From Geosiphon pyriformis uo1 (lineage: Eukaryota; Fungi; Glomeromycota): a stretch of DNA of 64,000 nucleotides. The DNA is taken from NCBI GenBank assembly GCA_016748015.1, contig JAAOMT010000302.1:484459-548458 (forward strand), read 5' to 3'. The notes beneath the pieces are model-generated. The model was given only the letters and a program-made list of their open reading frames with translations, did not search any database and was not told where the DNA came from. The position numbers were made by a program, and so were the translations under genes. This document shows positions 1 through 53,311 of this stretch, piece after piece. The first letter of the stretch is position 1. Every line of letters begins with the position of its first letter.

Positions 1-1135
1 ATATTAAGTCAGCTTTTGGTGTTTTTGGTGAAGTTTCTTATGTTGTGCTGAAGTCTGCTGTTGTTTGACAATATGTGGTTGTTTATTTTAAAGAATTGGA
101 TGCTGCTGCTTCTGCTTTTACTTACTGGTCAATTTTGGTGGGCAAAGATAGTGTTTGGATTTTTTTTTTGTCAATCAAAATGAAACAATTTTGTCTTGTG
201 ATCAGTTCAAGACCAAGTTGGTTAACCTTCCTTCTGGCTGTACTGTTTTTGAGATTAATAATATGATTTTCCAGATTGATGGCTGGACTTGTTTTATTTC
301 TTTTTTACCTGATTCTGGTCATTGTTCTCAGTTTGCTCTGGTTACATTTGATTTCCAAGTTGATTTAAACTCTATGGTTGTTAAGATTAGTATCTTAAGG
401 AAGTATTGTATTTGGTAAAAAACCTCTGGTTGTTAATGTTGCTTTAAGTGTCAAGAAGTGGGCTATTTGGCTGTAAACTACAAAGTTTTTCTATCTTCCT
501 CTCTCAAGACTTCCAAAATGTTTAAAACATATTTTGTAAGCAATGTTTTTTATGCAAAAACTTCTGTTTTTTTGAATTTTTTTGAGTTTCCTCTCTTAAC
601 AGCTTTTATTTTTTTTTTCATGGTTGTTGGTAATTCTTTGGTGTCTTTTTAGTTGGCTTTTTTGAAGTCTAATTTGGTCAAGCTTTTTGCTTTGGTTAAG
701 TCTATTATTAAACCAATTGGTTCTTTGGTCAAATTGTTCAAACAATTTATTAATGAGAATTTGGTTTTAAGTAGTAAATTGGTCTTAAAATTAATAAAAT
801 TTTGGTGCATATGGGTTCTTTTAGTAAGATTATTGGTAAGTTGAAAAGAAAGGTAATTTTTTTAAGAAAAAAGTACTGCATAGAAGATATTAATATATTT
901 GGTAATTTAGAGCACTCAGTTAATATAGATGATAAGGTGTTTTCTAACTTGATGTTCCTTTGAGAACATGAATCTATTAATGTTAAAGCTAATGTCTTGA
1001 AGACAGCTGAATAACTGGTTGTATTGATTTCTTGTAGTGTTATTTTGTTTTTTGTTATTTAAAAGATGTCATTTTTGGGTAAGTTTTTTTCTAATGCATT
1101 AATGTAGTATAGCCTAAACTGGCTCAAGTAGCTGG
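1..1135 (+). mobile_element. ORF1-only non-autonomous LINE partner (half-LINE), 3' part; 3' UTR cut by a Gypsy LTR
   Basis: Decayed frame IKSAFGVFGEV...W.YVVVYF...WSILVGKDSV aligns with LINE ORF1 (SEFGEIKSIK...WSFLIGKDSV). Degenerate CCHC knuckle CFKCQEVGYLAVNY at ~440-480. Frame ends KMSFLGKFFSNALM* at 1107 and is followed directly by the LINE-type 3' hairpin AACTGGCT-CAAGT-AGCTGG (1117-1135), with no ORF2. Confidence 0.7.
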
Positions 1136-9988: not shown

Positions 9989-10961
9989 TGTTACCAGAGA
10001 TTTTTGGTCTCTTTTCTTGAATGTTGTTAATGTTTGTCTGTTGCTAATTTCACGTTTTCTGAAAGCAGTTGAATCTCTAATAATTGAATTTATCTTCAAA
10101 TTATCTTCTATAATTTGAACTTGTTGGGCTTATAAATAGAATAACCAATTCCATGCCAGTTATTTTGTGTAGTTATGTTGTAGTAAATGTTAACTCTTTC
10201 CCAAAAATTGCTCATCTGGAAGCTTACTAAAATTGCATAGTTACTTTGCTGTAAAAGTCAACTCTTTTACAAAAATTTTGTCTGTAAGCTACCTTAATAA
10301 TTATGATAAGAAAGTAAAAAGAAAAATAAAAGAAATGTAAAAGAAATAGAATTTTGTCAAGGAAAACGTTTTCTATCTAGGTTTGAAGTCACTAACAAAT
10401 TACTGAAATTAGTAGCTAATCAATTTCAAAATTTTAGTTGTGTTGAAAGAATTTCAAGTGTAATAATCAAAAAATTTGGGTTTTGAATATTTAATTTTTA
10501 TTTGAAATGTGTAAAAGATGATTTGTTCCAATTAAGATATCTAAAGTAGGATACTATGATAAGATACTATAAGAAGATACATTTTCTTGAAAAAAAAAGC
10601 TTTTTTTTTATACAACTTGTTATAGTACTAGTCTTTGAACTTGCACTTTTTTCTTTGCTACAATTTTGGTGAACTAAAGATACATTTCAGCAAACTACAA
10701 GTTATTTCACTAAACTATTGATTATTTCGGCCAATTTTCATTAATTTCGGCGAATTTTGACTATATTAAATGGTTTAAGATATTGTGTAATTTGATTATC
10801 TTAATTTTTATAGTACAAATCGGATTATTGATTGAGTAATAATATTTGATAATTTGATTAATTAATAAGTGATAATCAAAATGATAATAATATGCTAATT
10901 AATAATAAGAATTATAAGGATAATTTCATGCTAATTAATAGCTAAAATTCTATTGGTAACA
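9989..10961 (-). repeat. 5' LTR of the complete element
   Basis: TGTTACCAG...TTGGTAACA, colinear with the other LTRs, followed by PBS on the minus strand. Confidence 0.93.
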
Positions 10962-18200: not shown

Positions 18201-19901
18201 CAATTTTTTGGTGAGAGTAGTGAAAATTTTTTTGGTGAATAAGTTGTTATTGGTGAATAATCTGCTTTGTGCTTTCCATAAGTCTGGTGTTTTTTTAATG
18301 TCTAGTATTTTGGATCAGTTCTTGTATTACAAATCTGTTTTTTCATTGAGATGGTTTAGTGTTGCATTTGGTGACAGACTTTTTGACAAGAAGAGAAAGA
18401 TGATAGACTGGAAAACATTTCAGTATTGGCAGTGGTTAGATCTAAGAGACCCTGTGCCTTACTGGTTTATGTTGGCATCTGATTTTATGAACAATTCTGT
18501 TTTTTTGGAAGTCAGAACTGCTGCTGTTCTTGGAAAAGATGAGCTAAATGTTTTGGATTCTGAAAAGTTTGCTGTTATTTGTGATAGCTTGTTGAAAATG
18601 CAGTCTAATTGCATTAAGATCTATATGGATAAGTTTTTAAAAGATACTAGTTCCAGTAAGGTGACAGGTGGAGCAGCTGTGTACTTTCCAGCTGCAAACA
18701 TGAGTATTGGGATTAGGGTAGCTGGGCTTTTGTCCTTTACTTTGACTGAACTGCATGCTGTGGCTTTGGCTTTGGAGTATGTTCTATTTTTATGCTCTGT
18801 AGTTCTGCATTCAGATAACCAATCTGCAATAGATGCCTGTGTGTTCGAGATCTTTTTTACTGTGCTTGACTTCCATAACCAATGTTAAATCAAACAATTA
18901 CAAATAGTTAATCTTCTTAAGAATAAAAACATTTCAATAAAATGAGTAAAAATTAAAGGCCATTCAAGTATATCTGGCAATATTAAGACTAATGCATTGG
19001 TTAATAAAACTACTTTTTCATCTTTATCTTTGCTGGTTAAAATTTGGAAGAGGTTTTTGATTGTTAAAAAAACTGTTGTATCTGACAATACTTGTTATTT
19101 TGTTTGCAACACTGATCAATTTGCTATGTCTATTGGGAGACTGGTTCTGGTTTTAATATAATTTCAAGTGTTATAATTAAGAAGATAGATTGGAGGACTA
19201 CTGCAATAATTTGGCACTCTAATTCATATATGCTTTTTGAATTTACTAACAGAAAGTCAACCAATTTACATACATATTTAATAAAGGCAGTTTATAGACA
19301 ACTACTAGTTGCAGTTAGAAAAAAATTGTATAACAGAAATTATCCTGGGATGTTATGCTTGCTGTATAGTAAGATAGAATTATTTGATCATGTTTTTACT
19401 TGTTCTAGTAACTCTGATCTCTGTAAGAACATTTTGGTTGAGGCTATTAAGAAATAAATATCATTGTCTGGTTGTTCATGTTCATCTAATTCTGTCATTT
19501 TACATTTACTAGTGACATATTTTTTGAATATAAGTCTGTATACAGTTGTTTGCAAAGGTTTTGTGATAAGAAATTGGTATGCTGAAGCTGTTTTGGTTTT
19601 TGAGAAAAAGAATAAGACTGCTTTGGCCTTTGTAGAATACATTAGGTTAGTGGTGGAGTTGTATTGCACTAAAGTGTAGATTGTTAAGACCAAACATAAG
19701 ATAGATATAGAGAAAATTAGTTTGATTGGGAATACTAGTGTAATTTTAGACTTGTTTCACTATGTAATATTTATGTTGTCAGTCAGAGTTGTTTGTATGC
19801 TTAGCATTATGGAATTTTTTGCTATTAGGTTTGGTAGATGCAATTTGTGTTATTTTTTTTCTGATTTAAGTAGTAATGCTTTTATTAGTATAAACATGTA
19901 G
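15247..19901 (+). pseudogene. LINE1 ORF2 (APE endonuclease, RT, RNase H, C-terminal Cys motif)
   Basis: Fragments 15538-19679 in the ORF track; many stops. Confidence 0.88.
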
Positions 19902-19910
19902 TGTTGTCTT

Positions 19911-20015
19911 GTCCAGTTTAAGTGGTTGGTCACATGTAGTCAGTGTATAAGCTGCATTTAGTTTAATCTACTTAATTTGGTTTTATGTATTAGATAGTAG
20001 TTAAAGTTTACTCAT
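19911..20015 (+). ncRNA. Predicted structured 3' UTR (LINE1 copy)
   Basis: GTCCAGTT-TAAGT-GGTTGGTC; CATGT-N7-GTATA; AGCTGCATTTAGT/ATTAGATAGTAGTT; terminal ACTCA. Confidence 0.5.
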
Positions 20016-21554: not shown

Positions 21555-22155
21555 CTATAAATACTACTAAATTTTTATAATATTATTTAAAAAATTTTTA
21601 TTAAACAATATATATTACAATAAAAAAATATTATAAGAAAAACAAAATAGTTAAAAAAATTATAGATTAATTTAAAAATGTTTTAACAAATAAAATTGTT
21701 ATTTTTTTATAATTTTTTGGCCAATTTAACTAAAAAACTGTATTTAAATTATTATTTTTATTAAAAATTTGATATTTAGATACATTAAACACAATTTTTT
21801 TATTTTATATATATGATTTATAATTATTTAACAATTTAAAAATACTTTTATATATGTTTTTTTTGCAAATAAAAATATAATTGCAAATATAAAATTTTAT
21901 TTAGTACTTAAAACTATAAAAGCAGCTTAGTATTTTTAATTATAAATACAAAAATTATTGGAAAAAAAATTAGTTAATAATATAACATAATTTTTAATAA
22001 TTAAATCTAAATATGTTTATAAATTTTAAATCAAATATCAAACTTGTTGTTTAAGTTTAAATTTAAAATTTAGCCAAAATTTTTGTTGAAATTTAATTCA
22101 ATTTTATGATTTTATCAAATTTAAATTAAATTAAACTAAATATTAAAATTTTAAT
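21555..22155 (+). repeat. AT-rich MITE/TIR-like repeat, inverted partner of 31590-32362
   Basis: Long reverse-complement match, e.g. TTTTTTGGCCAATTTAA..AAAACTGTATTTAAATTATTATTTTTATTAAAAATTT and AATATAATTGCAAATATAAAATTTTATTTA. Confidence 0.8.
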
Positions 22156-23372
22156 TATAAAATTCATAAAATTTTCTTAAATTAATATTTAAAAACCAAA
22201 TATTTGATTTATAATAAACTATCATATTATACATAAAATTAACAACATTTATAATTGTTTCTAAATTTTTATTAAATATTTAAAAATTTTTTAATAATAG
22301 CTATATATAAATAACTATTAAATTTTATATTATGTAATAATTAAATAATTAAAAAGTTTATAATTAATTAGCAAAATAAATCTTTTTATTTAATATGAAT
22401 ATTAATAATAACAATATTTTTAACAATAAAATTAAATATATATATAAAAATATAATTGAAATTTTTTAACAAATTATAACATATAATACTTAGATATAAA
22501 GTATTATATGTCTTTTTTTTAATATAATTAATAATTTTTTATATAAAGCTTTTATAAAATAAAAACATAAAATAATAAAGATTAATTTAGTTAATTTAAT
22601 ATATATATGTTTATTTAAGTATTATACTATAATTGTATATAGCAGATTAAAATCACAAATCAAAAATTTATTTACAAATTTTCAAGTATATTTATATTTT
22701 TAATCAATATAATTAACAGAATTAAATAATTTTTTTATAAAATACCAAGTATTTTTAGAAACAAATTGGTTATTAGCAATTAAATATTACTTATTAATAT
22801 TAAAAAACAAGACAAAATACAAGTTTACAAAAATATTTGCAATTATATTTGTGTAATTATTATTTATATTACTAAAATAACTTTTAACTTTATTTTATTT
22901 TTTGTAATTATTAAAAACTTTTTACAAATAAATTAAATAAACTTTAAATACATGTTATTACAAATTAAAAATAATAATTTTTAATACCAAAAATTACAAT
23001 ATATATTATAAAATTAGTATTAAAATTATATAAAAAAAAATTTTATTATCAAATTTTATTTAATAATATAAATTAACAACAAAAAAATAAAAAACTAATA
23101 ATTAGTTTAATTATATAATCTAATTAAAAATCTAAATTAAATATAAAAAATTTTATTAAATTAAAAAACATTAATAATTATTCTATATAATTTAATAATA
23201 ATAGATTTTATTATATTTTAATATTTTTATATATTTTAGTAAATAATAAACTAAAATTGTTAAAAAACTTCTTTTTTTTATTCATTTTAAATTCCCAAAA
23301 AAAAGCCAAATATTTTTCTGAAAAAAGTTTTTTATCATTTAGCATACTAAATTCAAACCATTTTTGCTTGAT

Positions 23373-28200: not shown

Positions 28201-29872
28201 TTCTTGATTGTAATTTATCTTTGAGTGGCCCTTTGGTCAATTCTTTTTGGTTGTGTGATGGAGTGGCCATGTCAGTTGTTTTGGATGAGTCTAAGTTTGT
28301 CAAGTTTCTCCCTTCTCTCCAGTGGTATGATATTGCTTTTGTGGATTAACTTCATGATCGTCATGGTGCTGTTTTTGATTGGTACACCTTTAAGCAGTGG
28401 AAGAGATTAGACCCCTGTGGATCTATTCCAGAGTGGTTTAAGCTGTTCACTGCATTTTTCAATGATGTGACTTTGTCTCCACCTCATCCCTTGGCTGGGT
28501 ATGGTGGTGTTTCTTCAGACATTTGTAGTTTTGGTAACTTTGTGTCTGTTTGTGATCGTCTTTTGCAGATTGATACTGGTGCTTTATCTGTGTACACAGA
28601 TGGATCCTTAAAAAATCTGGACATGGCCAACTGTAGGGCTGGTGCTGCCGCCTTTTTTGAGAACATTGGTTTGGGTTTGGGTGTTGGTGTGTTAGGTTTA
28701 ATGTCTTCTACTTTGGCTGAATTGCAAGCTATTGTACTGGCTCTGAAGTGTGCTTCTTTATCTAGTTCTATTCATCTGTTTTCGGATAGTCAACCTGCTC
28801 TGGATGCTTGCAAGTCAGAACTGGGTCTGATGTGTCCTGATTTTTGTAATCAATGTTGGGTTGAACATTAACATATTGCTGATATTATTTGTGGTAAAAA
28901 TTTAAGGGTTTGTTGGCACAAAGTGAAAGGCCACTCTGGTGTTTTGGGGAATGAATGAATTGACATAATTGCTGATGCCACTTCTCTTTTGGGCTGGTGT
29001 TTTCCTCTTCACTTGGATGAGCATTTTATTGTGTCTAATTATGGTGTGGTTTCTGACAATTCTAGACATTTTGTTCATGATATCTATCATTCCATTTGTC
29101 ATGCATATTAGAAGATTAGTTCTGGTTCAAGGTTCTTAGAAGGCAGTTTGCTTTCTGATATTGATTGGGTCCACTCTTTGTTGGTGTGGCATCCTGATTT
29201 GCATATGGCTACTGGTTTTACTAGCTGGTCCTTAGCTAATGCATGCACATACTTCATGAAAGCTTTATATTATCACTTGTCCATTGCTGTTCAGAAGCAT
29301 CTTTATAGTAGGCTTTATCCCAATGTGTTGTGCTTGTATTGTGGTGAAGTAAAAGTGTCAGATCATGCATTCTCTTGTAAGGTTGACAAAGCTGCCTGCC
29401 ACCAGTTATTGGACTTCCATGTGAGTTCTTGGAAGGCACTTTTTGGCTTTGCTCATTTTTCTTTGTGTGTATTGTAGCTGTTGTCATCTTGTTCTCCTGA
29501 TGCTTCTGTGTGTACAGCTCTTTTCAAGTGTTTTGTTTTTGATGGTTGGTTCCACAAAGCTGTTTCCATTTTTTATGATCTCAAGATTGCTAGTATAGAG
29601 GTTATTAAATTTGTGTACTCTCTTAGTATGGCTTTTAGGAATAATATTTGGTTGATTCACGCCAAGCACTGTGTCTATATAAAAAAAATGGTTTGATTCT
29701 CCTTGATAGTTCAGCAATCATCCCAGTTTCTGGTTTGGCTTTAGGGTTTTTTGTTGGTGTATTAAAATTGCTTGGCATTGCTGATGCTTTCAGTGTGTGT
29801 TTTGGTTTTTGCAAATCTTGTTTGTTTTTTCCAGGTGTTAACGGCTCAGTATCAATTTATATAGCTACATAG
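25197..29872 (+). pseudogene. LINE2 ORF2 (APE, RT, RNase H, Cys motif)
   Basis: KVATCNVRE, FTESKL, IDFVF, MDHKAV, LQDMQKAYN, GAFVNNT, VYTDGSL, AELQAI, KVKGHSG, CLYCGE..DHAFSC. Confidence 0.92.
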
Positions 29873-29881
29873 TATTGTTCT

Positions 29882-29984
29882 GATCAGCCCAAGTGGCTGG
29901 TCGCGTATAGAAAATGTATAATTCATGCCTAATTTAGATCATTTCTTTGATGTATAACATTAGGTAGTGTTTGGATTTCACTCG
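29882..29984 (+). ncRNA. Predicted structured 3' UTR (LINE2 copy)
   Basis: GATCAGCC-CAAGT-GGCTGGTC; CGTAT-AGAAAAT-GTATA; ATTCA.TGCCTAAT/ATTAGGTA..TGGAT; terminal CACTCG. Confidence 0.6.
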
Positions 29985-31589
29985 TTAAGCAAATAAAAAA
30001 AATATATATTTTTATTAATATAATTTAAAATTTAAAATTTACAATTATGTTTTAAAAATAGTAATCAAAAAATATAAACAATTAATCTGTTTTAATTATA
30101 TTAATTATATTTAAATTCAATTATTTAAATTATTAAGTCTTATTAAATAAGCTCAAATTAAATTAGTTAATTTAAAAATAATTAATATATTTAAAATAAT
30201 ATTAATATAATATATAGATTGATATTAATTTAAATATATATACAGTTTTTTTATAAGTTGAAAAAAGTATTAATTTTATTAAATTATAATTTTATAATAA
30301 TTAATAGATTATTTTTGTATTTTTGTAATTTTTTTTATATGTATACTTTTTTATTAAAAAAAATTGATTTAAAATAAATAAAATTATATAAAAAATTTAT
30401 GTTTTATAAATATATTAAATATATTATAAATAAAATTATCTTTAATATTTTATAACTTTTTGATAATTTTATCTTTATTTTTTAAAATTAATTATTTAAA
30501 AATTACAATTTTTTAATAGTTAATTAAAATTCTGATTTAAATTTGGTTTGTTAATTTATTTTGTTTTTTGTATTTTATATAATATTTAATAATATTAATT
30601 TGGTTCTTGTTTAAAAATAAATAATAATAATATAATAATTATTTACTTTAAAAACATTTTTTAAAATCTTTTTTTTTGTATATTATAAAATAAATTTATA
30701 TAATTATGTTTATTTTATAATTAAAAAAAATATAATATATAATATAAACATTATTAAATAAAAATAATATAATAAATTTTGTTTAAATTTTTTTAGTATT
30801 AAAATAAATAATAATAAATTTTACTTTGTTATTTATAATAAAAACACAATTAATAATACAAATTTTTTTATTTAATTTTTATTATTATATTTTAATATGT
30901 AATCTAATTATTTAATACAATATTTTACTTAAATTAAATATAATTTACATATTTTTTACATGTAATTAAACATAAATTCAGCTTAAACTAAACTATATTA
31001 AATTTAAAAAAAAAAAAATTATTTTATATAAAACTAAAACCAAAAAATTATTATTTATAATAATATTACTTAATTATTTTATAGTTTTATTTAAATTAAA
31101 CTTAATATTATTAAGTTAATACTTTTAAAAAGTAATTAATCTAGTATAAACTTTATTATTTAAAAATTTATTATTAAATTTTTTTATATAATTAGTATTA
31201 AATTACAATTAATTTTAATTATATTTATATTTAAAAAAAGCTTATTTATAATTTTATCAAGAATAAACATATTATATTAAATAATACTAATAATATTTTT
31301 AAGCTCTATATACAAAATAGAAAAAATATTTAAAAAAATAATAATTAAAATAATTAACAAATTAATTGGCTTAATAACAGATTTAATAAAAATAACCAAA
31401 ATCTAATATTTTAAAAACTTTAACTTAAATTTAATTACAAAATTATTATTAAAAATAGCCAAAAACAACAGCTTTAACATAAAATTTTTTATCAATAAAA
31501 AATAAAATAAAAACAATAAAGTTATTAATAAACTTAAAAACAAATTTTGGAAAAAAAATAAAACTACATTACTATTTACAGTCAAATAA

Positions 31590-32362
31590 TTTAAACTTTA
31601 ATATTTAAAGTTTTAAAACTTGGTTTAATTTAATTTAATCTAATTAAATTATTAAATTAAACCAATTTAAAACAAAAATTTTGGCTAAATTTTGAACTTA
31701 AATTTAAATCAAACTTAAAATTATTAAATCTAAACCAAACTTAAATCCAAACAATAAGTTTAGTTCAAATTTGGTTTAAAGTTTATAAATATATTCAGAT
31801 TTAGTTATTAAAAATTATATTATATTATTAACTAATTTTTTTTAATAGTTTTTATATATATAATCAAAAATACTGTGCTGTTTTTATAGTTTTAAGCATT
31901 AAATAAAATTTTATATTTGCAATTATATTTTACTTGCAGAAAAAACATTTTTAAAAACAACAAATAATTTTTAAATTATTAAGTAATTATAAATCATATG
32001 TGTAAAATAAAAAATTATGTTTAATATATATAAATATTAAATTTTTAATAAAAATAATAATTTAAATACAGTTTTCTAATTAAATTGGCCAAAAAATTAT
32101 AAAAAATAATGATCTTATTTGTTAATACATTTTTTAATTAATCAATAATTTTTTAAATATTTTGTTTTTTTTTTAATATTTTTTATTATAATTTTACAAA
32201 AAAATAGTTTATGTACATATTTTAAGACCAAATATTTAGCTGTTTTTTTTTTTTGTTTACTTAAACTTGTTAAAAAAATTTAATTTATAATTTAAATTAA
32301 ACTTAAATAGTATTTAAAGTTCAGTTTAGTTTAGTTTATAAAATTTTTACTAGTATTTATAG
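31590..32362 (-). repeat. AT-rich MITE/TIR-like repeat, inverted partner of 21555-22155
   Basis: Reverse-complement match to 21555-22155. Confidence 0.8.
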
Positions 32363-33430: not shown

Positions 33431-34240
33431 ATATTATTTTATTTAATAAATTTTTAAAATTATAAGTAATAATATTTATTAATAAAGTAAATAACAATAT
33501 TTTAAATCTATTTTATTGTTTTAAATTTTATGATTTTTAATTATTTTAATAAAATAAACAAATTCTTATTAATCGAAATTAATTAACTAAAAACCAAAAA
33601 ATTAATTTGTTTTAATTTAACAAACTTTATTATAGTTTTTTATTATAGTTTAATTAATTATAATTTAATTAATTAAATTCAAACAAAATTAAAAAAACAA
33701 TTTTTTTACAAAAATACTCTTATTTTTATTTAATGTTATAGTTTTATTTAAACTAAATATTAATGTAAATATTAATTTAATAATCTTAAGAAAACAAATA
33801 TTTTTTTAAAACTATTTATTAATAAAACCATTTTTTTTAATTATTTATATTTTTTTTAGGTTTTTTTATTAATAACTAATAAATTAATATTTAAAGCATA
33901 AAATTTTTTAATAGTTTTAATATTATAGTAAATTATGTTTAATAATAAAGTATTTAACTTAATATTTACTTTTTTATTTTAAAAATATTTGTTATAAAGT
34001 TTAAAAAAAGTTTACTTTTATTATTAATATTAAATTTAATAATAATTATTAAGATAATATATATTTAAAATCTATTTTTATATAATTAAACAAATTAAAA
34101 ATAGTTATTTTGTTATTCAAAAATAAAATTATTTTATTATTAAAGTTTTTTATATTTTTTTACTTTTATTGGCTTTTAAGTAAAATTTTCAATAAAGCTA
34201 TATATAATATTTTTTATAAACTTTTTTTGATTATATTATT

Positions 34241-34380
34241 ATTAGTAATAATCATTAATTTTTGTATAAAAAATTAATAAAACAGCAAAAAAAAACTTTT
34301 TTTTAGTTATATAACTATTAGTAATAATCATTAATTTTTGTATAAAAATTAATAAAACAGCGAAAAAAAACTTTTTTTTT
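34241..34380. repeat. ~76-bp tandem duplication
   Basis: ATTAGTAATAATCATTAATTTTTGTATAAAAA(A)TTAATAAAACAGC(A/G)AAAAAAAACTTTTTTT twice. Confidence 0.9.
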
Positions 34381-34681
34381 AATTTATTATATTTATATTA
34401 AATAATATAATTATATATTAATTTAAAACAAAAAAAATACCAAAAATAAAAAATTAAAATTGTTTTTTTGCCTGTTTTAAATTTTTAACTATTTAAATAA
34501 TAATAAAAAAACTTAAGAAACAAAATCTGTTTAGTTGTTTTTATTATTAAAAAAACTAAAAAAATAAAACTTCTTTTTCTCTTACTTTCACAAATTCTTA
34601 AAAAGCACTTTTCTGAAAAAGAAGTTTTTTATTTTTTTTTGTTAGTATTTTACAATTTTTTTTTCTAATAATCCATTTTTC

Positions 34682-39500: not shown

Positions 39501-41254
39501 GTGTTGGCATCCCATTCACTCCCTGAGTTCCCCAGTGCATGTTTGCATTAGTTCTTTAAATAATTTTTTAGCTGGTGTAGTCTGTATTTTGGCAAAAAAT
39601 AATCTTTTTCTGAGTGGATCTTTGGACAATCCATTTTGTTATTGTGATAGAGTTTTTATGTCAGTGGTTTTTGGGAAAGTTAAGTTCTGTGCATGTCTCT
39701 CCTCTTTACATCAGTATAATGTTGTCTTTGTAGATCAGCTTTGTGATCATCATGGTGCCGTTTTTAATTGGAAAATTTTTAAGTGCTGGAAGAGGTTGGA
39801 TCCTTGTGGTCCAATTCCTGAGTGGTTTGGTTTTTCTGTTACCTTTCTTAGTAATGTGGCTTCTTTTTCTCCTGGTTCATCTCTCCTTGAGGATGTTGGT
39901 AAGCTTTTGAATATTCTGAAGTCTCAAGAATTTAAGTTGGTATGTGATCAGTTGTCTTATATTAGTACTGATAATCTGTTTGTCTATATGGATGGCTCTT
40001 TAAGAGATTTGGGCACCATATGGAGGAAGGCTGGGGCTGTTGTCTTTTTTAACAACATTGGTTTGGGTTTGGGCATAAGAGTCACTGGCTTGTTGTCTTC
40101 CACTTTGGTGGAGCTACAGGCCATAGCTCTGATATTGGAATGTGTTCCTTCTCTTAGCTCAGTCTGCTTATATTCTGATAGTTAGGCTGCTTTGGATGCA
40201 TGCAAATTGGAGCTATGTCTTATTTGTCTGGATTTTTGTATTTAAGTGTCAGCATATTGTGAACATTATTCATTGCAAAAATTTAAGGGTGAATTGGATT
40301 AAAGTGAAAGATCACTTAGGTATTATAGGGAATGATTATGCAAACACCCTTGTTGTTGTTGTCTCTAATTCTAATTGGCACTTTTCCCTCCGTTTGAAAG
40401 ACCATTGTCTTTTAGCCAGTAATGAGCTTGTTTTTGATAATTCTAGGCATTTTGTTTAGGATGTTTTTAGATCAGTTTATCATGTGCATTAAGAAGTTGG
40501 TTCTGGCTCAAAATTTCTGGTGAGTGATTTGGTATCGGACGTTGATTGGTTGAGATCCTTCTTGGTATGGCATTCTGATTTGCATATGGCTATAGGCTTC
40601 ATAAGCAAATCATCTGCTGGCTTGCGTACATATTTTATGAAGGTCTTACATCATTGACTGCCTGTTGCTGTGCAGAAGCAACTATACTCCAGACATTACC
40701 CTAGTGTATTATGTTTGTTCTATGGTGAAGTTGAATTTTCTGATCATGTTTTCTCTTGTGTAATTGACCTCTCTACTTACTGTTAGTTGTTAGAAACTTA
40801 TGCAGCTTTCTAAGAGCTGATTTCTGGTCTTTTTCATTCCTCTTTTTGTGTGTTTCAGCTTCTGTTGTTTTGTGCTTTTGATGTCTCTGTGTTCACAGTC
40901 CTTTTTAAAAATTTTGTTTTTGATGATTGGTTTCAGGAAGCTGTGTCTGCCTTTCATGATCCCAAACTCGTGGGTCAAAAAATTGTGGAATTCATGTGCA
41001 CTTTCAGTCTTAGCTTCAAGGATAGCATATGGTCAGTTCGTGCTAGACACTGAGCCCTTATGGAAAAAAATGAATTGATTTTACCTGATGGTTTAATACC
41101 TGCTTCGATTTTTGGTCTGTCATTAGGGCTGTCTGCTGGTATTGTTAGGTTGCTTGAAATTGCTGATGCTTTTGGTGTTTGTTTTGGTTTCTGTAGGTCA
41201 TGTTCATTCTTTTCTGGTATTGGCAATAATGTTTCAGTTCATATAGCTGTGTAG
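36574..41254 (+). pseudogene. LINE3 ORF2 (APE, RT, RNase H)
   Basis: KIATCNVRG, TETKL, GDFN, IDYIF, SDHRAV, AFVNDT, VYMDGSL, ELQAI. Confidence 0.92.
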
Positions 41255-41263
41255 TGGTGTCTT

Positions 41264-41366
41264 AATTAGTCTGAGTGGCTGGTCACATGTAGAAAAAGCA
41301 TGATTCATACCTAGTTTAAGTTATTTGTATAATGTATTATATTAGGTGGTGTTTGGACTTTACTCA
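41264..41366 (+). ncRNA. Predicted structured 3' UTR (LINE3 copy)
   Basis: AATTAGTC-TGAGT-GGCTGGTC; CATGT-AGAAAAA-GCATG; TACCTAGT/ATTAGGTG; terminal ACTCA. Confidence 0.6.
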
Positions 41367-45790: not shown

Positions 45791-46367
45791 GCAGGAAATA
45801 ATAGAAATGTTTAGTTACAATCCATCCGAATACACTATGTACTAATTGAGCTAGAACACCAGGTAAAAGGATTTAGAGCGAACGATGTTATTTGAGTTTA
45901 ATATTATTGATTAAAAGTAGGCTACGTACCTAGTGGCCGAAAAAATAACTTTCAAGGTATTCCTGTGTGATAGGGCAAAATTGATTCGATGATCAATGAT
46001 TGTATGCATTCTAGCCGGTTTCATCGTCTATCAGAGTTTTTTTAAAAAAAATACACAATGATAATGAGACATAAAAAATATTTTTATATTTATAAAGGGT
46101 TGAAAAAAATAATTAAAGTTTCTATTTAATATAAAAACATAGCACCAAGTCTTAAACTAGATAATATTACCAAGTTTTCTGTATCAATTATTTATTATAA
46201 TATTCAATTGAAGATAAAATGCAATGTAAAATAAAGAAAATGATCAAACAATACATTTACTGAAAACTAACCATTTTACTTATTAAAAAAAGTGTATGCC
46301 ATTTTTTAACTATTTTTATCATTAATTATGTCAATGCTTAGAAAAATATGTGCAAAAACATGATTAA

Positions 46368-48253
46368 TTTACGAGTACAGCCATTACAATACAATCATAT
46401 AAGATTCTAAAAATAAGTGTGGCTCATGCCTTTTCTACACGTGACCAGCTACTCGAGCCAGTCAAGACGAAACTACAGAAGTAAACTTGTCCAAAAAAGC
46501 CATCTTTTGAACTATTTCAATCATTTTATGACTATCCGTAATCAAACTGGCCCTTAAAATATCATTAAATTATTAAATATGTTTTTATATTCAAAATTAT
46601 CTAAGTCTTTATCTATATTAGCATTAATGACAAAATCAATCATATTAAGTTTATCTTTTACACTATATTCTATCTTTAATGTTACTATATTTCTGCTTAC
46701 TTTATCAACAACTTTGTTAAAAACTTTTATATGTTCTATAATTACATTATTCTTATTTATAAACAAATTGTTAATACTATAATTATTCTTAAAAAATTGT
46801 TTAAATATAACAACCAAAGTATTAACAAGATCAACAATAAATTTGACTAGTATTTTCAATTTATTCAACTCAAATTCCAAAAAAACCAATTAAAAAAAGA
46901 CCAAAGAATCAACAATAACAGTAATTAATACAATTAAAGATTTAATATTAAAAAAAACCAAAAAACAATAGTTTTACATAGAATTTTGTATTGACAAAAA
47001 ATAAAATAAAAAATTTAAAGCTATTAACAGACTTAACAATATCTTATAATTTAAAAATATATAATTCATATTTTGATATTTATAATAATAATAATATTCA
47101 AAATTTTTTTATCAAATATAATATTTATATAAAATATTAGATTTCAAAACAATAAAGCTAAAAAAAAATTGGCTAATTTAATCTTAAAAGTATTTTTTAA
47201 GTTAATAATTTTTTTTAATTAAACAAAAAAAATATTTTAATATTGTTTTTTTAATTAATACAGATTAATAAGTAAAAATAACAACAACAAAAAAAACTTT
47301 TTAAAGTAAATAATAACATATTATTACAAATTAACAGACTTTAATTTAATTAAAGTAATAATATCAAAAACACCAAAAACATTTTTAATATTATTACAAA
47401 ACATATTAAAAAAAATATTATGAAATATAACAAAAATAAAAAAAAACAGAAACTAACAAAAAATTTTGCAATTTTAAGTAAGTTTAAAAAAAAATTAAAT
47501 TTTAGTAATAATAATCAAAAAGACATTAAAAACAAAATTTACACAAAACAACTTTATATTGTTTTTTGAAACTAACTTAAACCCAATAATGCCAAACAAT
47601 AAATAAAACAAAAAATTAATTAAGACTAATTTGATCTTAAAAATAGCATTAAATACTAGAATAAAAACTATTTATTTAAAGAATTTTTAATTGATTTTCA
47701 GATATTATTAAAGACAACATTAGAAAACAAAGAAGAAAAAAATAATTGGTTTCTATTTGGTTAGTTCAATCTTTAAAATATTATTTAAGATTTTATTTAA
47801 AACCACAAAAAAATTTGGTATAACAATAGCAAATACAAACAACTGTTTTGAAGTTTCTGGTCTTTTTAGTTATTTGCAAAATAGTAATAATAATAGTAAT
47901 AATAAATACAAAAAAAACCAGCTTGTTAATCAGCCTATTATTAAAAACTTTGAATCTTTTAGAGAAGATAAAAACAATATTGGAACTAATTTTAATGTGT
48001 TATTTAAAAAAAACCTTAATTGGAAAAAAATTACTAGCCAAAGATAAAAAAATACTTTACAAGTCATCAAAAACAGCTTTTTACTATTAATATTTATGAA
48101 AAATGTTGTCAAAATGTTTTTTTAGCTGTTTCTATAATGAAGAGACTCTCTTTTATTAAAATTTTATTAGCTACTAATAAGAAAAGTAATATTTACAACT
48201 TTTTACTCTTTGCTTTAGTCATGGTCATAAAATTAGAAAAGAGAAAAAGTTTT
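46368..48253 (-). mobile_element. ORF1-only non-autonomous LINE partner (~1.9 kb), both ends present
   Basis: 5' AAAACTTTTTCTC, ATG at 48228 (MTMTKAKSKK), body homologous to 1-1107, end QKMAFLDKFTSVVSS* (46462), then LINE-type 3' UTR ending ACTCGTAAA. Confidence 0.78.
46372..46463 (-). ncRNA. Predicted structured 3' UTR, best preserved copy
   Basis: GACTGGCT-CGAGT-AGCTGGTC; CGTGT-AGAAAAG-GCATG; AGCCA/TGGCT; terminal TACTCG complementary to CGAGTA. Confidence 0.65.
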
Positions 48254-52031: not shown

Positions 52032-52913
52032 ATGAGTTATTTGGAAAATTCTTTTCCTAATAAAAATTCAGCTCCTGATCAATATGAAGTTAATATTTCA
52101 TTGCAAGAATATCCTAAGCCCCCTTTCCCGCCCAATATAATTCCAGAACAATTGATTACGAATGCCCTGGCGAAACTGGAAAAAACGGGAAAGGTATCCC
52201 AAATACCAAATGCCTTCTTGATTTACAGATTGGTTTTGAAAAATGAAATGGTAAAGAAAAATATTTTTCTTGGCATGCGTGAATTATCTGGTATTGCTTC
52301 GAAACTCTGGAATGAAGAGCCTGAAAATGTTAAAACATATTATCAAGAACTTTCTAATGAAGCAAAAACATTATTTCAAAACTTCTGGCAATCAACCTAC
52401 TCACAAGTCCAAATGATGGCTGATTCGCAAACATTATCCAAGGAATTTGTATGGAAAAATGACCCATACCAACAAGAGGCGATTAATTTTAACCTGGGTC
52501 ACGATGAAGTTGAGTCGTTAACAAAAATCAATTCCCAATCCGAACTTGGGCAAACTTCCACAAGTTCCGAGTTCCCCAACTTATTAAAAAATATACCTCA
52601 TGTTGAAAATCATCCTGGCTTTTCATTATTTACCGGTTTAAGTCCTAAGGCAGAAAATGTTTCAATACCAGATCAGGAATCGAAAAATCTAGAGTTTTTC
52701 CAAGATGTCCCTAATTTAATATTACAATCTGATACTTTCGGTGAAGAATTGAATCTTCATCATAGAACAATGCTCCTCGAGCAACTAGTTTTGAGCACAC
52801 TTTCTGGTAAAAAAGATCCTTTCCTTGTTGATTTCTCGGCGAATAGCATTGTAGATCGGGTTGCTAACCTTGAAAATTTGATTGCTCAACTAATTTGGAA
52901 TGGTTTAGAATAA
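52032..52913 (+). CDS. MATA-type HMG-box transcription factor, single exon, 293 aa
   Basis: PKPPFPP...IPNAFLIYR...MRELSGIASKLWNEEPENVKTYYQELSNEAK. Confidence 0.9.
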   Translation: MSYLENSFPNKNSAPDQYEVNISLQEYPKPPFPPNIIPEQLITNALAKLEKTGKVSQIPNAFLIYRLVLKNEMVKKNIFLGMRELSGIASKLWNEEPENVKTYYQELSNEAKTLFQNFWQSTYSQVQMMADSQTLSKEFVWKNDPYQQEAINFNLGHDEVESLTKINSQSELGQTSTSSEFPNLLKNIPHVENHPGFSLFTGLSPKAENVSIPDQESKNLEFFQDVPNLILQSDTFGEELNLHHRTMLLEQLVLSTLSGKKDPFLVDFSANSIVDRVANLENLIAQLIWNGLE

Positions 52914-53238: not shown

Positions 53239-53311
53239 GGCCCTCGCCTGGAATTGAACCAGGGCTTTAGCGATCAAGATTTGCTATGTGCGTCGACTAC
53301 ACTACGAGAGC
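53239..53311 (-). tRNA. tRNA-like Pol III gene with irregular anticodon arm (CTT/Lys possible) or tRNA pseudogene
   Basis: GCTCTCG/CGAGGGC acceptor stem, GTGT/GCAC D-stem, CCTGG-TTCAATT-CCAGG T-arm, T5 terminator ~13 nt downstream; 19-nt anticodon arm, D-loop lacks GG. Confidence 0.65.

Follow-up and report, generated by a model that had tools for sequence, protein, structure and literature searches.

The stretch of DNA considered here (the window, 64,000 nucleotides of contig JAAOMT010000302.1 of the fungus Geosiphon pyriformis) carries three diverged copies of a long interspersed nuclear element (LINE), arranged head-to-tail on the + strand with their ends close to 20015, 29984 and 41366. 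Each of them closes with a block of about 115 nt that follows the second open reading frame (ORF2), and the same block is met again on the - strand at 46372..46475, which we refer to as the focal copy, and in a cut form at 1105..1135. Judged from its sequence, the block is the complete, structured 3′ untranslated region (UTR) of an abundant LINE superfamily that encodes an APE endonuclease, a reverse transcriptase (RT) and RNase H with a C-terminal zinc knuckle. It would supply the dominant LINE superfamily of this fungus, an early-diverging member of Glomeromycotina, with a defined 3′ recognition module of 115 nt that has four helices and the stop codon in the closing helix.

The genome sampled was that of G. 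pyriformis (128 Mb), and all data derive from this one genome; the translation of an ORF at a related locus matches the G. pyriformis protein G9A89_009754 at 100% identity. We retrieved 152 genomic loci (271 kb) and aligned 139 UTR copies from loci L002–L152 in an alignment, A2, whose columns provide the helix positions used throughout. A covariance model, R1, was built from the UTR copies and searched against the window, the genome and the retrieved loci. Once inserted, a copy accumulates C>T and G>A changes by neutral decay, and so only differences between the founders of lineages are informative; association tests at the level of single copies were set aside as uninformative for the same reason. 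Twelve founder-like UTRs, each of 115 nt and non-coding, were reconstructed by preferring C over T and G over A wherever at least 25% of copies retained C or G. Structures were predicted from single sequences by minimum free energy (MFE), with z-scores, and with RNAalifold on A2, neither of which can predict pseudoknots.

R1 matches four copies in the window with E-values of 1e-14 to 1e-26 and the cut copy weakly, and the four 3′ ends and the cut copy are mutually alignable. The first-pass annotation, which was made from the letters alone, was therefore right to assign them one shared layout, but the block starts 12 nt further 5′ than it had supposed, at the ORF2 stop codon. Complete UTRs of 115 nt are present at 41252..41366 (+), within the LINE copy at ~34.6–41.4 kb (R1 116 bits, E 9.5e-27), and at 29870..29984 (+), within the copy at ~23.4–30.0 kb (R1 112.6 bits, with an ORF2 C-terminus upstream). 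In the former an ORF2 C-terminus lies directly upstream, poly(A) begins 1 nt past ACUCA and the MFE structure is the junction of helices P0, P1, P2 and P3 that is described below. The UTR at 19899..20014 (+), which is complete at 116 nt (R1 84.9 bits) and is followed by UAAAACUUGUAAUAAAAAA, terminates the LINE copy at ~14.0–20.0 kb, a member of the c19 lineage. The cut copy at 1105..1135 (+) comprises the stop codon, the 5′ arm of P0 and P1 as far as GCUGGU; R1 matches it weakly (1105-1177, E 0.25), and it is broken at 1136 by a different repeat, of the D12 family. The repeat that cuts this copy starts with TRTTAYYRGAGATTTTTGG and is seen also at 9989, 13084 and 20590, one of these others beginning ~570 nt beyond the end of the UTR copy at 20014.

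The 5′ boundary of the block is an invariant ORF2 stop codon, TAG. ORF2 frames end there in L030, L059, L038, L071 and L068: in L030 a 504-codon open frame terminates at the TAG that forms the first triplet of the block, and the same is true in two further deep lineages, represented by L059 and L038 (c46 type) and by L071 and L068 (c19 type). The block is thus the entire 3′ UTR, and its stop codon, which is always UAG, is located within the fold. Of 149 copies, 131 measure 115 or 116 nt from TAG to ACUCG. On the 3′ side, ACUCR is followed by U(U/A)AAA, then by ~5 nucleotides that are particular to each lineage (the P0096 lineage has CUUUAAU here, for instance, and c19 has CUUGUAAU), and then by an A-rich tail. 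The first run of at least six A begins 7–18 nt past ACUCR in most of the 139 copies; hence, a few exceptions such as the copy ending at 41366 apart, ACUCG is not the last templated sequence, and the proposal that ACTCG or ACTCA forms the last bases before the A-tail does not hold. Approximately 14% of the tails, taken over 8–40 nt after ACUCR in the 139 copies, are not poly(A) but consist of other simple repeats, namely (AAT)n in 10 cases, (A4-5T)n in 8 and (AAAT)n in one.

The focal copy (46372..46475, -) is matched by R1 at 46361-46475 (69 bits, E 7e-15), with its stop TAG at 46475-46473 and ACUCG at 46376-46372. Relative to L033 and its relatives it is without ~11 nt of the 3′ arms of P3 and P0b, and measures 104 rather than 115 nt; column 5 is also mutated (UAGUU). 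With these ~11 nt deleted from the 3′ strands of P3 and P0b the copy cannot form P0, which is absent from its MFE fold (z -0.47). The pairing of AGCCA with TGGCT, formerly taken for a P3 stem, is a by-product of this internal 11-nt deletion. Two hairpins are present. P1 (46442..46464, -) has a 9-bp stem, UGACUGGCU with AGCUGGUCA, around the 5-nt loop CGAGU at 46455-46451, and P2 (46425..46441, -) is formed by CGUGU and GCAUG around the 7-nt loop AGAAAAG. The focal copy had been presented as the end of an ORF1-only element, a description that finds no counterpart upstream, where no significant similarity to ORF1 or ORF2 was detected: tblastn gave nothing at E ≤ 1e-3, and the best ORF1 match under relaxed settings had E 0.1 (blastp E 0.76). 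Homology of the focal copy to other c46-type loci begins only ~10–30 nt before TAG. Its c46-type UTR is that of a third, deeply diverged LINE lineage, and occurs directly after the ORF2 C-terminus in at least 15 of the retrieved loci.

The superfamily is numerous. R1 returned at least 150 full-length matches from the genome and 109 from the 271 kb of retrieved loci, some of them eroded to 7–20% G+C, and a model that detects copies despite such heavy C>T erosion is useful for annotating the repeat-rich Geosiphon genome. The initial BLAST pass produced 327–1271 candidates per UTR query and ~4000 for ORF2 C-terminal queries, and heavily 5′-truncated copies retain the UTR block. Domains recognised in ORF2 are the APE endonuclease and, in an eroded window copy, a weak RVT_1 signal, together with RNase_H (E 3e-10) and a weak match to the zf-RVT zinc knuckle in an intact relative. 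A tree of ORF2 C-termini resolves many sublineages within three deep groups, and the UTR variants follow these three ORF2 lineages instead of being identical across them.

Between deep lineages the UTR is 63–74% identical, with a transversion divergence of 10–15%, whereas in the same comparison the last 450 nt of ORF2 are 42–55% identical, with a transversion divergence of 24–36%, and the ORF2 C-termini are only ~30% identical as protein. The non-coding tail therefore evolves 2–3 times more slowly than the coding sequence that adjoins it. A 3′ end that evolves far more slowly than the remainder is the signature reported for the tails of stringent LINEs (PMC3472496), and the conservation of this UTR above ORF2 points to the Geosiphon LINEs as being of the stringent type; comparable data are scarce for fungal LINEs.

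The block folds as a four-way junction. This same structure is the MFE fold of the young copies L118, L015, L040 and L033, which represent two deep lineages, and of the window copy at 41252, with z-scores of -1.5 to -2.9 overall and of -1.9 to -2.9 in the young copies, and RNAalifold recovers the same helices unprompted from the 139 copies of A2. The closing helix, P0, comprises two 4-bp segments and its 5′ strand starts inside the stop codon (UAGUG/CACU): in P0a, columns 2-5 pair with 113-116, such that AGUG of the stop region meets CACU, and in P0b columns 10-13 pair with 107-110. P1 joins columns 14-22 to 28-36 in 9 bp and bears a 5-nt loop (columns 23-27) of the form YGAGU, while P2 joins columns 37-41 to 49-53 in 5 bp and bears a 7-nt loop. 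Both hairpins agree with the first-pass annotation, the 8-bp stem that it gave for P1 being found as 8–9 bp. P3, of ~13 bp, joins columns 57-66 to 93-103, with a bulge at column 100 and an apical hairpin at 68-88. Standard pairs are formed by 92.6% of cells in A2, compared with 88.7% in shuffled alignments, among which 0 of 500 reached the observed value, and with 30–38% when partners are slid, which excludes chance as an explanation of the fold.

Compensated changes, including double transversions, are confined to P3 and one weaker case in P0b. The P3 fold is well supported: two to four pair types occur among the 12 founders at 58-102, 61-98, 65-94, 69-87, 72-84, 73-83 and 74-82, as for instance GC, GU, AU and UA at 65-94, UA, CG and AU at 72-84, and AU and CG at 74-82. 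The claim that a long P3 stem differs in sequence between families and still pairs is borne out to the extent that the differences between lineages are compensated, but the three sequence pairs that were quoted for it do not occupy homologous positions. Support for P0b is moderate, with 48 of 48 cells paired in the 12 founders and an exchange of UA and CG at 11-109. P1 and P2 are essentially conserved sequences among the founders, with G-U/A-U or C-G/U-G alternation.

A number of observations weigh against our reading of the block. Neither P1 nor P2 shows a compensated change among the 12 founders, and both contain fixed mismatches, at 16-34 (U.C, c19) and 21-29 (U.U, P0096 lineage) in P1 and at 37-53 (C.A, c19 lineage) in P2; what speaks for these two helices is conservation together with predicted stability. 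P0a is invariant, and hence its support is thermodynamic only. For one copy of the c19 lineage the MFE structure is not the junction (z +0.3). Mutual information corrected by the average product (APC) is dominated by lineage markers, and no more than four of the proposed pairs reach the top 60 of 6555, each of them in P3. The effective sequence number of R1 is 2.06, and with three deep lineages from one species the covariation statistics are weak. Finally, a non-autonomous partner that shares the tail is hypothetical here: among the retrieved loci the UTR copies without an ORF2 match display no common upstream body. Several of these copies end in an ORF2-type '...FGF...' C-terminal peptide, and such endings identify them as 5′-truncated or eroded ends of LINEs.

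The most likely function of the block, with odds that we would set a little above even, is that of the 3′ tail of a 'stringent' LINE, one that the RT of the same element plausibly recognises. Like the tails of that type, it terminates an autonomous LINE, following the ORF2 stop codon and preceding the A-tail, and is conserved between lineages above the adjoining end of ORF2. Support for a role in 3′ recognition comes from its position between stop and tail, its conservation in excess of coding sequence, its invariant length and a fold that was recovered independently; from the block itself, these observed properties and the partial covariation we infer that the ORF2 protein (ORF2p) binds it and that it has a role in target-primed reverse transcription (TPRT). 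The ORF2 protein would bind the fold of its own UTR, probably in cis as translation releases it at the stop codon, which lies within that fold, and with the UTR so bound TPRT would start in the A-rich tail just downstream. To this extent the original interpretation survives, since a conserved and structured 3′ UTR is plausibly recognised by RT, but its further element, a loop-to-terminus pseudoknot that positions the 3′ end of the RNA, is not supported.

A pseudoknot between the P1 loop, (C)GAGU(G), and the 3′ sequence (C)ACUCG, which would replace P0a or alternate with it as the functional form recognised by RT, is in our estimation unlikely. That the loop CGAGU is complementary to ACUCG can be read directly from the sequence; the complementarity of YGAGU(G) with (C)ACUCR is present in 12 of 12 founders, and 91.3% of helix cells pair across the 139 copies. 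The energies are also permissive, the loop-tail duplex being worth between -4.5 kcal/mol (5 bp) and -7.1 kcal/mol (6 bp, with the closing pair of P1 opened) before any pseudoknot penalty, which is comparable to the 4–5.6 kcal/mol that it costs to free CACUCG through the loss of P0a. The fixed U.U at 21-29 in the P0096 lineage widens the loop and would ease the contact, and in R2 there is a precedent for a 3′ UTR pseudoknot that is recognised by a protein, with compensatory rescue (bioRxiv 10.1101/2024.11.11.623112). The core of the proposed helix, however, columns 24-28 with 113-117, is the same in every one of the 12 founders, and a helix that never varies can yield no covariation that would speak for it or against it. 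The covariation of loop and terminus that had been claimed shows nothing beyond mutational bias where there is variation to assess. The flanking pair 28-113, said to co-vary, has no association (AU 2 observed against 1.9 expected), and the pair 23-118, a CpG on both sides, gives a pooled odds ratio of 3.4 (p 9e-4) that the unpaired control 38-118 equals (odds ratio 3.4, p 6e-4) and that falls to 1.8 (p 0.35) on stratification by sublineage; the match with the control shows that the pooled signal is that of older copies losing more CpGs everywhere. In the sub-branch L141/L143 an A at column 23 is uncompensated. Furthermore, the nested P0a takes up the same CACU without a pseudoknot penalty and is preferred by MFE and RNAalifold (both of them blind to pseudoknots), the pseudoknot requires that all five nucleotides of a 5-nt loop be paired, and ACUCG, at 7–18 nt from the tail, does not place the extreme 3′ end. 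The two contacts, P0a and that of loop with tail, are mutually exclusive and, by these calculations, roughly iso-energetic, such that sequence data alone cannot separate them, and a pseudoknot mechanism has no positive evidence. A termination-coupled switch, in which three invariant motifs, UAGUG at the stop, GAGUG in the P1 loop and CACUC near the 3′ end, alternate as partners, would accommodate both contacts, and we regard it as highly improbable. In the resting RNA, CACU and UAGUG would close the junction as P0a; a ribosome terminating at UAG would melt P0a and free CACUCG for the P1 loop; and the pseudoknotted state would be captured in cis by the newly released ORF2p. If true, such a switch would offer a structural explanation of the cis-preference of a LINE.

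The block might otherwise be conserved for a role at the level of sequence or RNA processing, such as 3′ end formation and polyadenylation, nuclear export, stability or the control of translation termination. It is in favour of this view that P1, P2 and the UAGUG, GAGUG and CACUC motifs are conserved as sequence with no compensated changes, that the stop codon is always UAG and sits inside the fold, and that 107 of the 139 copies have AAUAAA-like hexamers no more than 25 nt downstream. Nonetheless, an A-rich tail that contains T is expected to hold AAUAAA by chance, and the hexamer mostly overlaps the point where the tail begins; position and length match those of LINE 3′ tails for which RT binding is proven (PMC4176376); and P3 and P0b change yet stay paired, which points to structure, so that we hold a processing role to be rather doubtful. 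Least probable, at a very small chance, is that the block has no present function and owes its uniformity to recent common ancestry, to the exchange of 3′ modules between lineages or to a site in DNA, the CACGTG E-box at the junction of P1 and P2. A tail could be spread by template switching from one LINE RNA to another, the c41 and c46 lineages do have CACGTG, and the confinement of the data to one genome favours this explanation also. It is opposed by the correspondence of UTR variants with the three ORF2 lineages, and by a UTR divergence 2–3 times below that of the adjacent coding DNA. The E-box was rejected as a DNA-level site, for all c19 founders have CACATG instead, while its P2 pair is kept (G-U to A-U).

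Several further features of the window and of the retrieved loci were recorded. On the LINE sense strand, C>U decay exceeds G>A decay (at the A2 pair 15-35, for example, GU numbers 26 and AC 12), and the LINE copies in 13900-41400 (+) have a positive GC skew and a negative AT skew; repeat hypermutation looks strand-asymmetric. L035 (contig C466) and L036 (contig C253) share 1499 nt at 100% identity, a stretch that takes in a UTR cut off within P1; this is either a segmental duplication or assembly redundancy. Three tandem repeats of 75–76 nt occupy 34193-34418, on the immediate 5′ side of the LINE copy beginning near 34.6 kb, and could represent promoter repeats or monomers of a 5′ UTR. Inverted repeats of ~560 nt (73–83% complementary) at 21620-22174 and 31584-32189 flank the LINE at 23.4–30.0 kb, and may be the ends of an older element that received the LINE insertion. 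Between the repeats there are, apparently, host genes: an ORF of 293 aa that contains an HMG box (Pfam E 7e-7), at 52032-52913 (+), and adjoining it a tRNA-Lys(CTT) gene at 53239-53311 (-).

The first-pass annotation did not recognise the fold as a known family, and the covariance comparison agrees with it. Rfam gave no match at the gathering threshold in the window and none at E ≤ 1 in L118, L040 and L080, its R2_retro_el, ribozyme and tRNA-like models included. A tRNA-like reading of the cloverleaf-like junction was rejected, since ARAGORN finds no tRNA at the UTRs. In the search for relatives in other species, the best 150 representatives after clustering at 50% appear to come from Geosiphon alone. 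A metagenome scan with an ORF2 C-terminal profile gave no match, and a scan for the P1/P2 core motif gave four chance matches on unrelated, GC-rich contigs, in collections that hardly cover Glomeromycotina.

Of the systems already described, the nearest in kind are stringent LINEs such as ZfL2 and UnaL2, in which ORF2p binds a cognate 3′ stem-loop that is needed for retrotransposition (PMC4176376, PMC1636434). UnaL2 of the eel and ZfL2-1 and ZfL2-2 of zebrafish, members of the L2 clade, likewise have a structured RNA at the extreme 3′ end, ahead of a simple-repeat or A-rich tail. Their tails are, however, single hairpins of ~40–60 nt, whereas in Geosiphon a four-way junction of 115 nt takes up the whole UTR, stop codon included; the Geosiphon LINE differs also in being fungal, in its RNase H domain and in its A-rich tail, and binding by ORF2p is here putative. 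In plants, the L1 element LINE1-1_ZM and the short interspersed nuclear elements ZmSINE2 and ZmSINE3 carry a conserved 3′ hairpin upstream of poly(A), with a divergence of 0.14 compared to 0.57 elsewhere (PMC3472496). Plant and green-algal L1 elements resemble those of Geosiphon in ending in poly(A) and in having a 3′ end far more conserved than the rest, and in plant L1 and Geosiphon alike a hairpin shows compensatory changes, in Geosiphon mainly within P3, while a small number of unpaired bases, a CGAG motif among them, are strictly conserved. The plant L1 element, by contrast, is ~45–50 nt long, consists of one hairpin and is shared with SINEs, and the likeness noted here is one of form. 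The R2 protein grips a pseudoknot-hinge-stem-loop in its 3′ UTR at the initiation of TPRT, with compensatory rescue (bioRxiv 10.1101/2024.11.11.623112). R2 demonstrates that a mechanism of the pseudoknot type exists, whereas in Geosiphon the pseudoknot is only a possibility with which a nested helix competes; moreover, R2 has a restriction-like endonuclease and is specific to ribosomal DNA, and the Geosiphon UTR has no Rfam R2 match at E ≤ 1. The kind of element is therefore already well known, and no new RNA mechanism is established by our analysis; what sets the Geosiphon element apart is the larger fold, a four-way junction over the whole UTR, the placement of the stop codon in its closing helix, and the occurrence of such a tail on a fungal LINE that bears RNase H.

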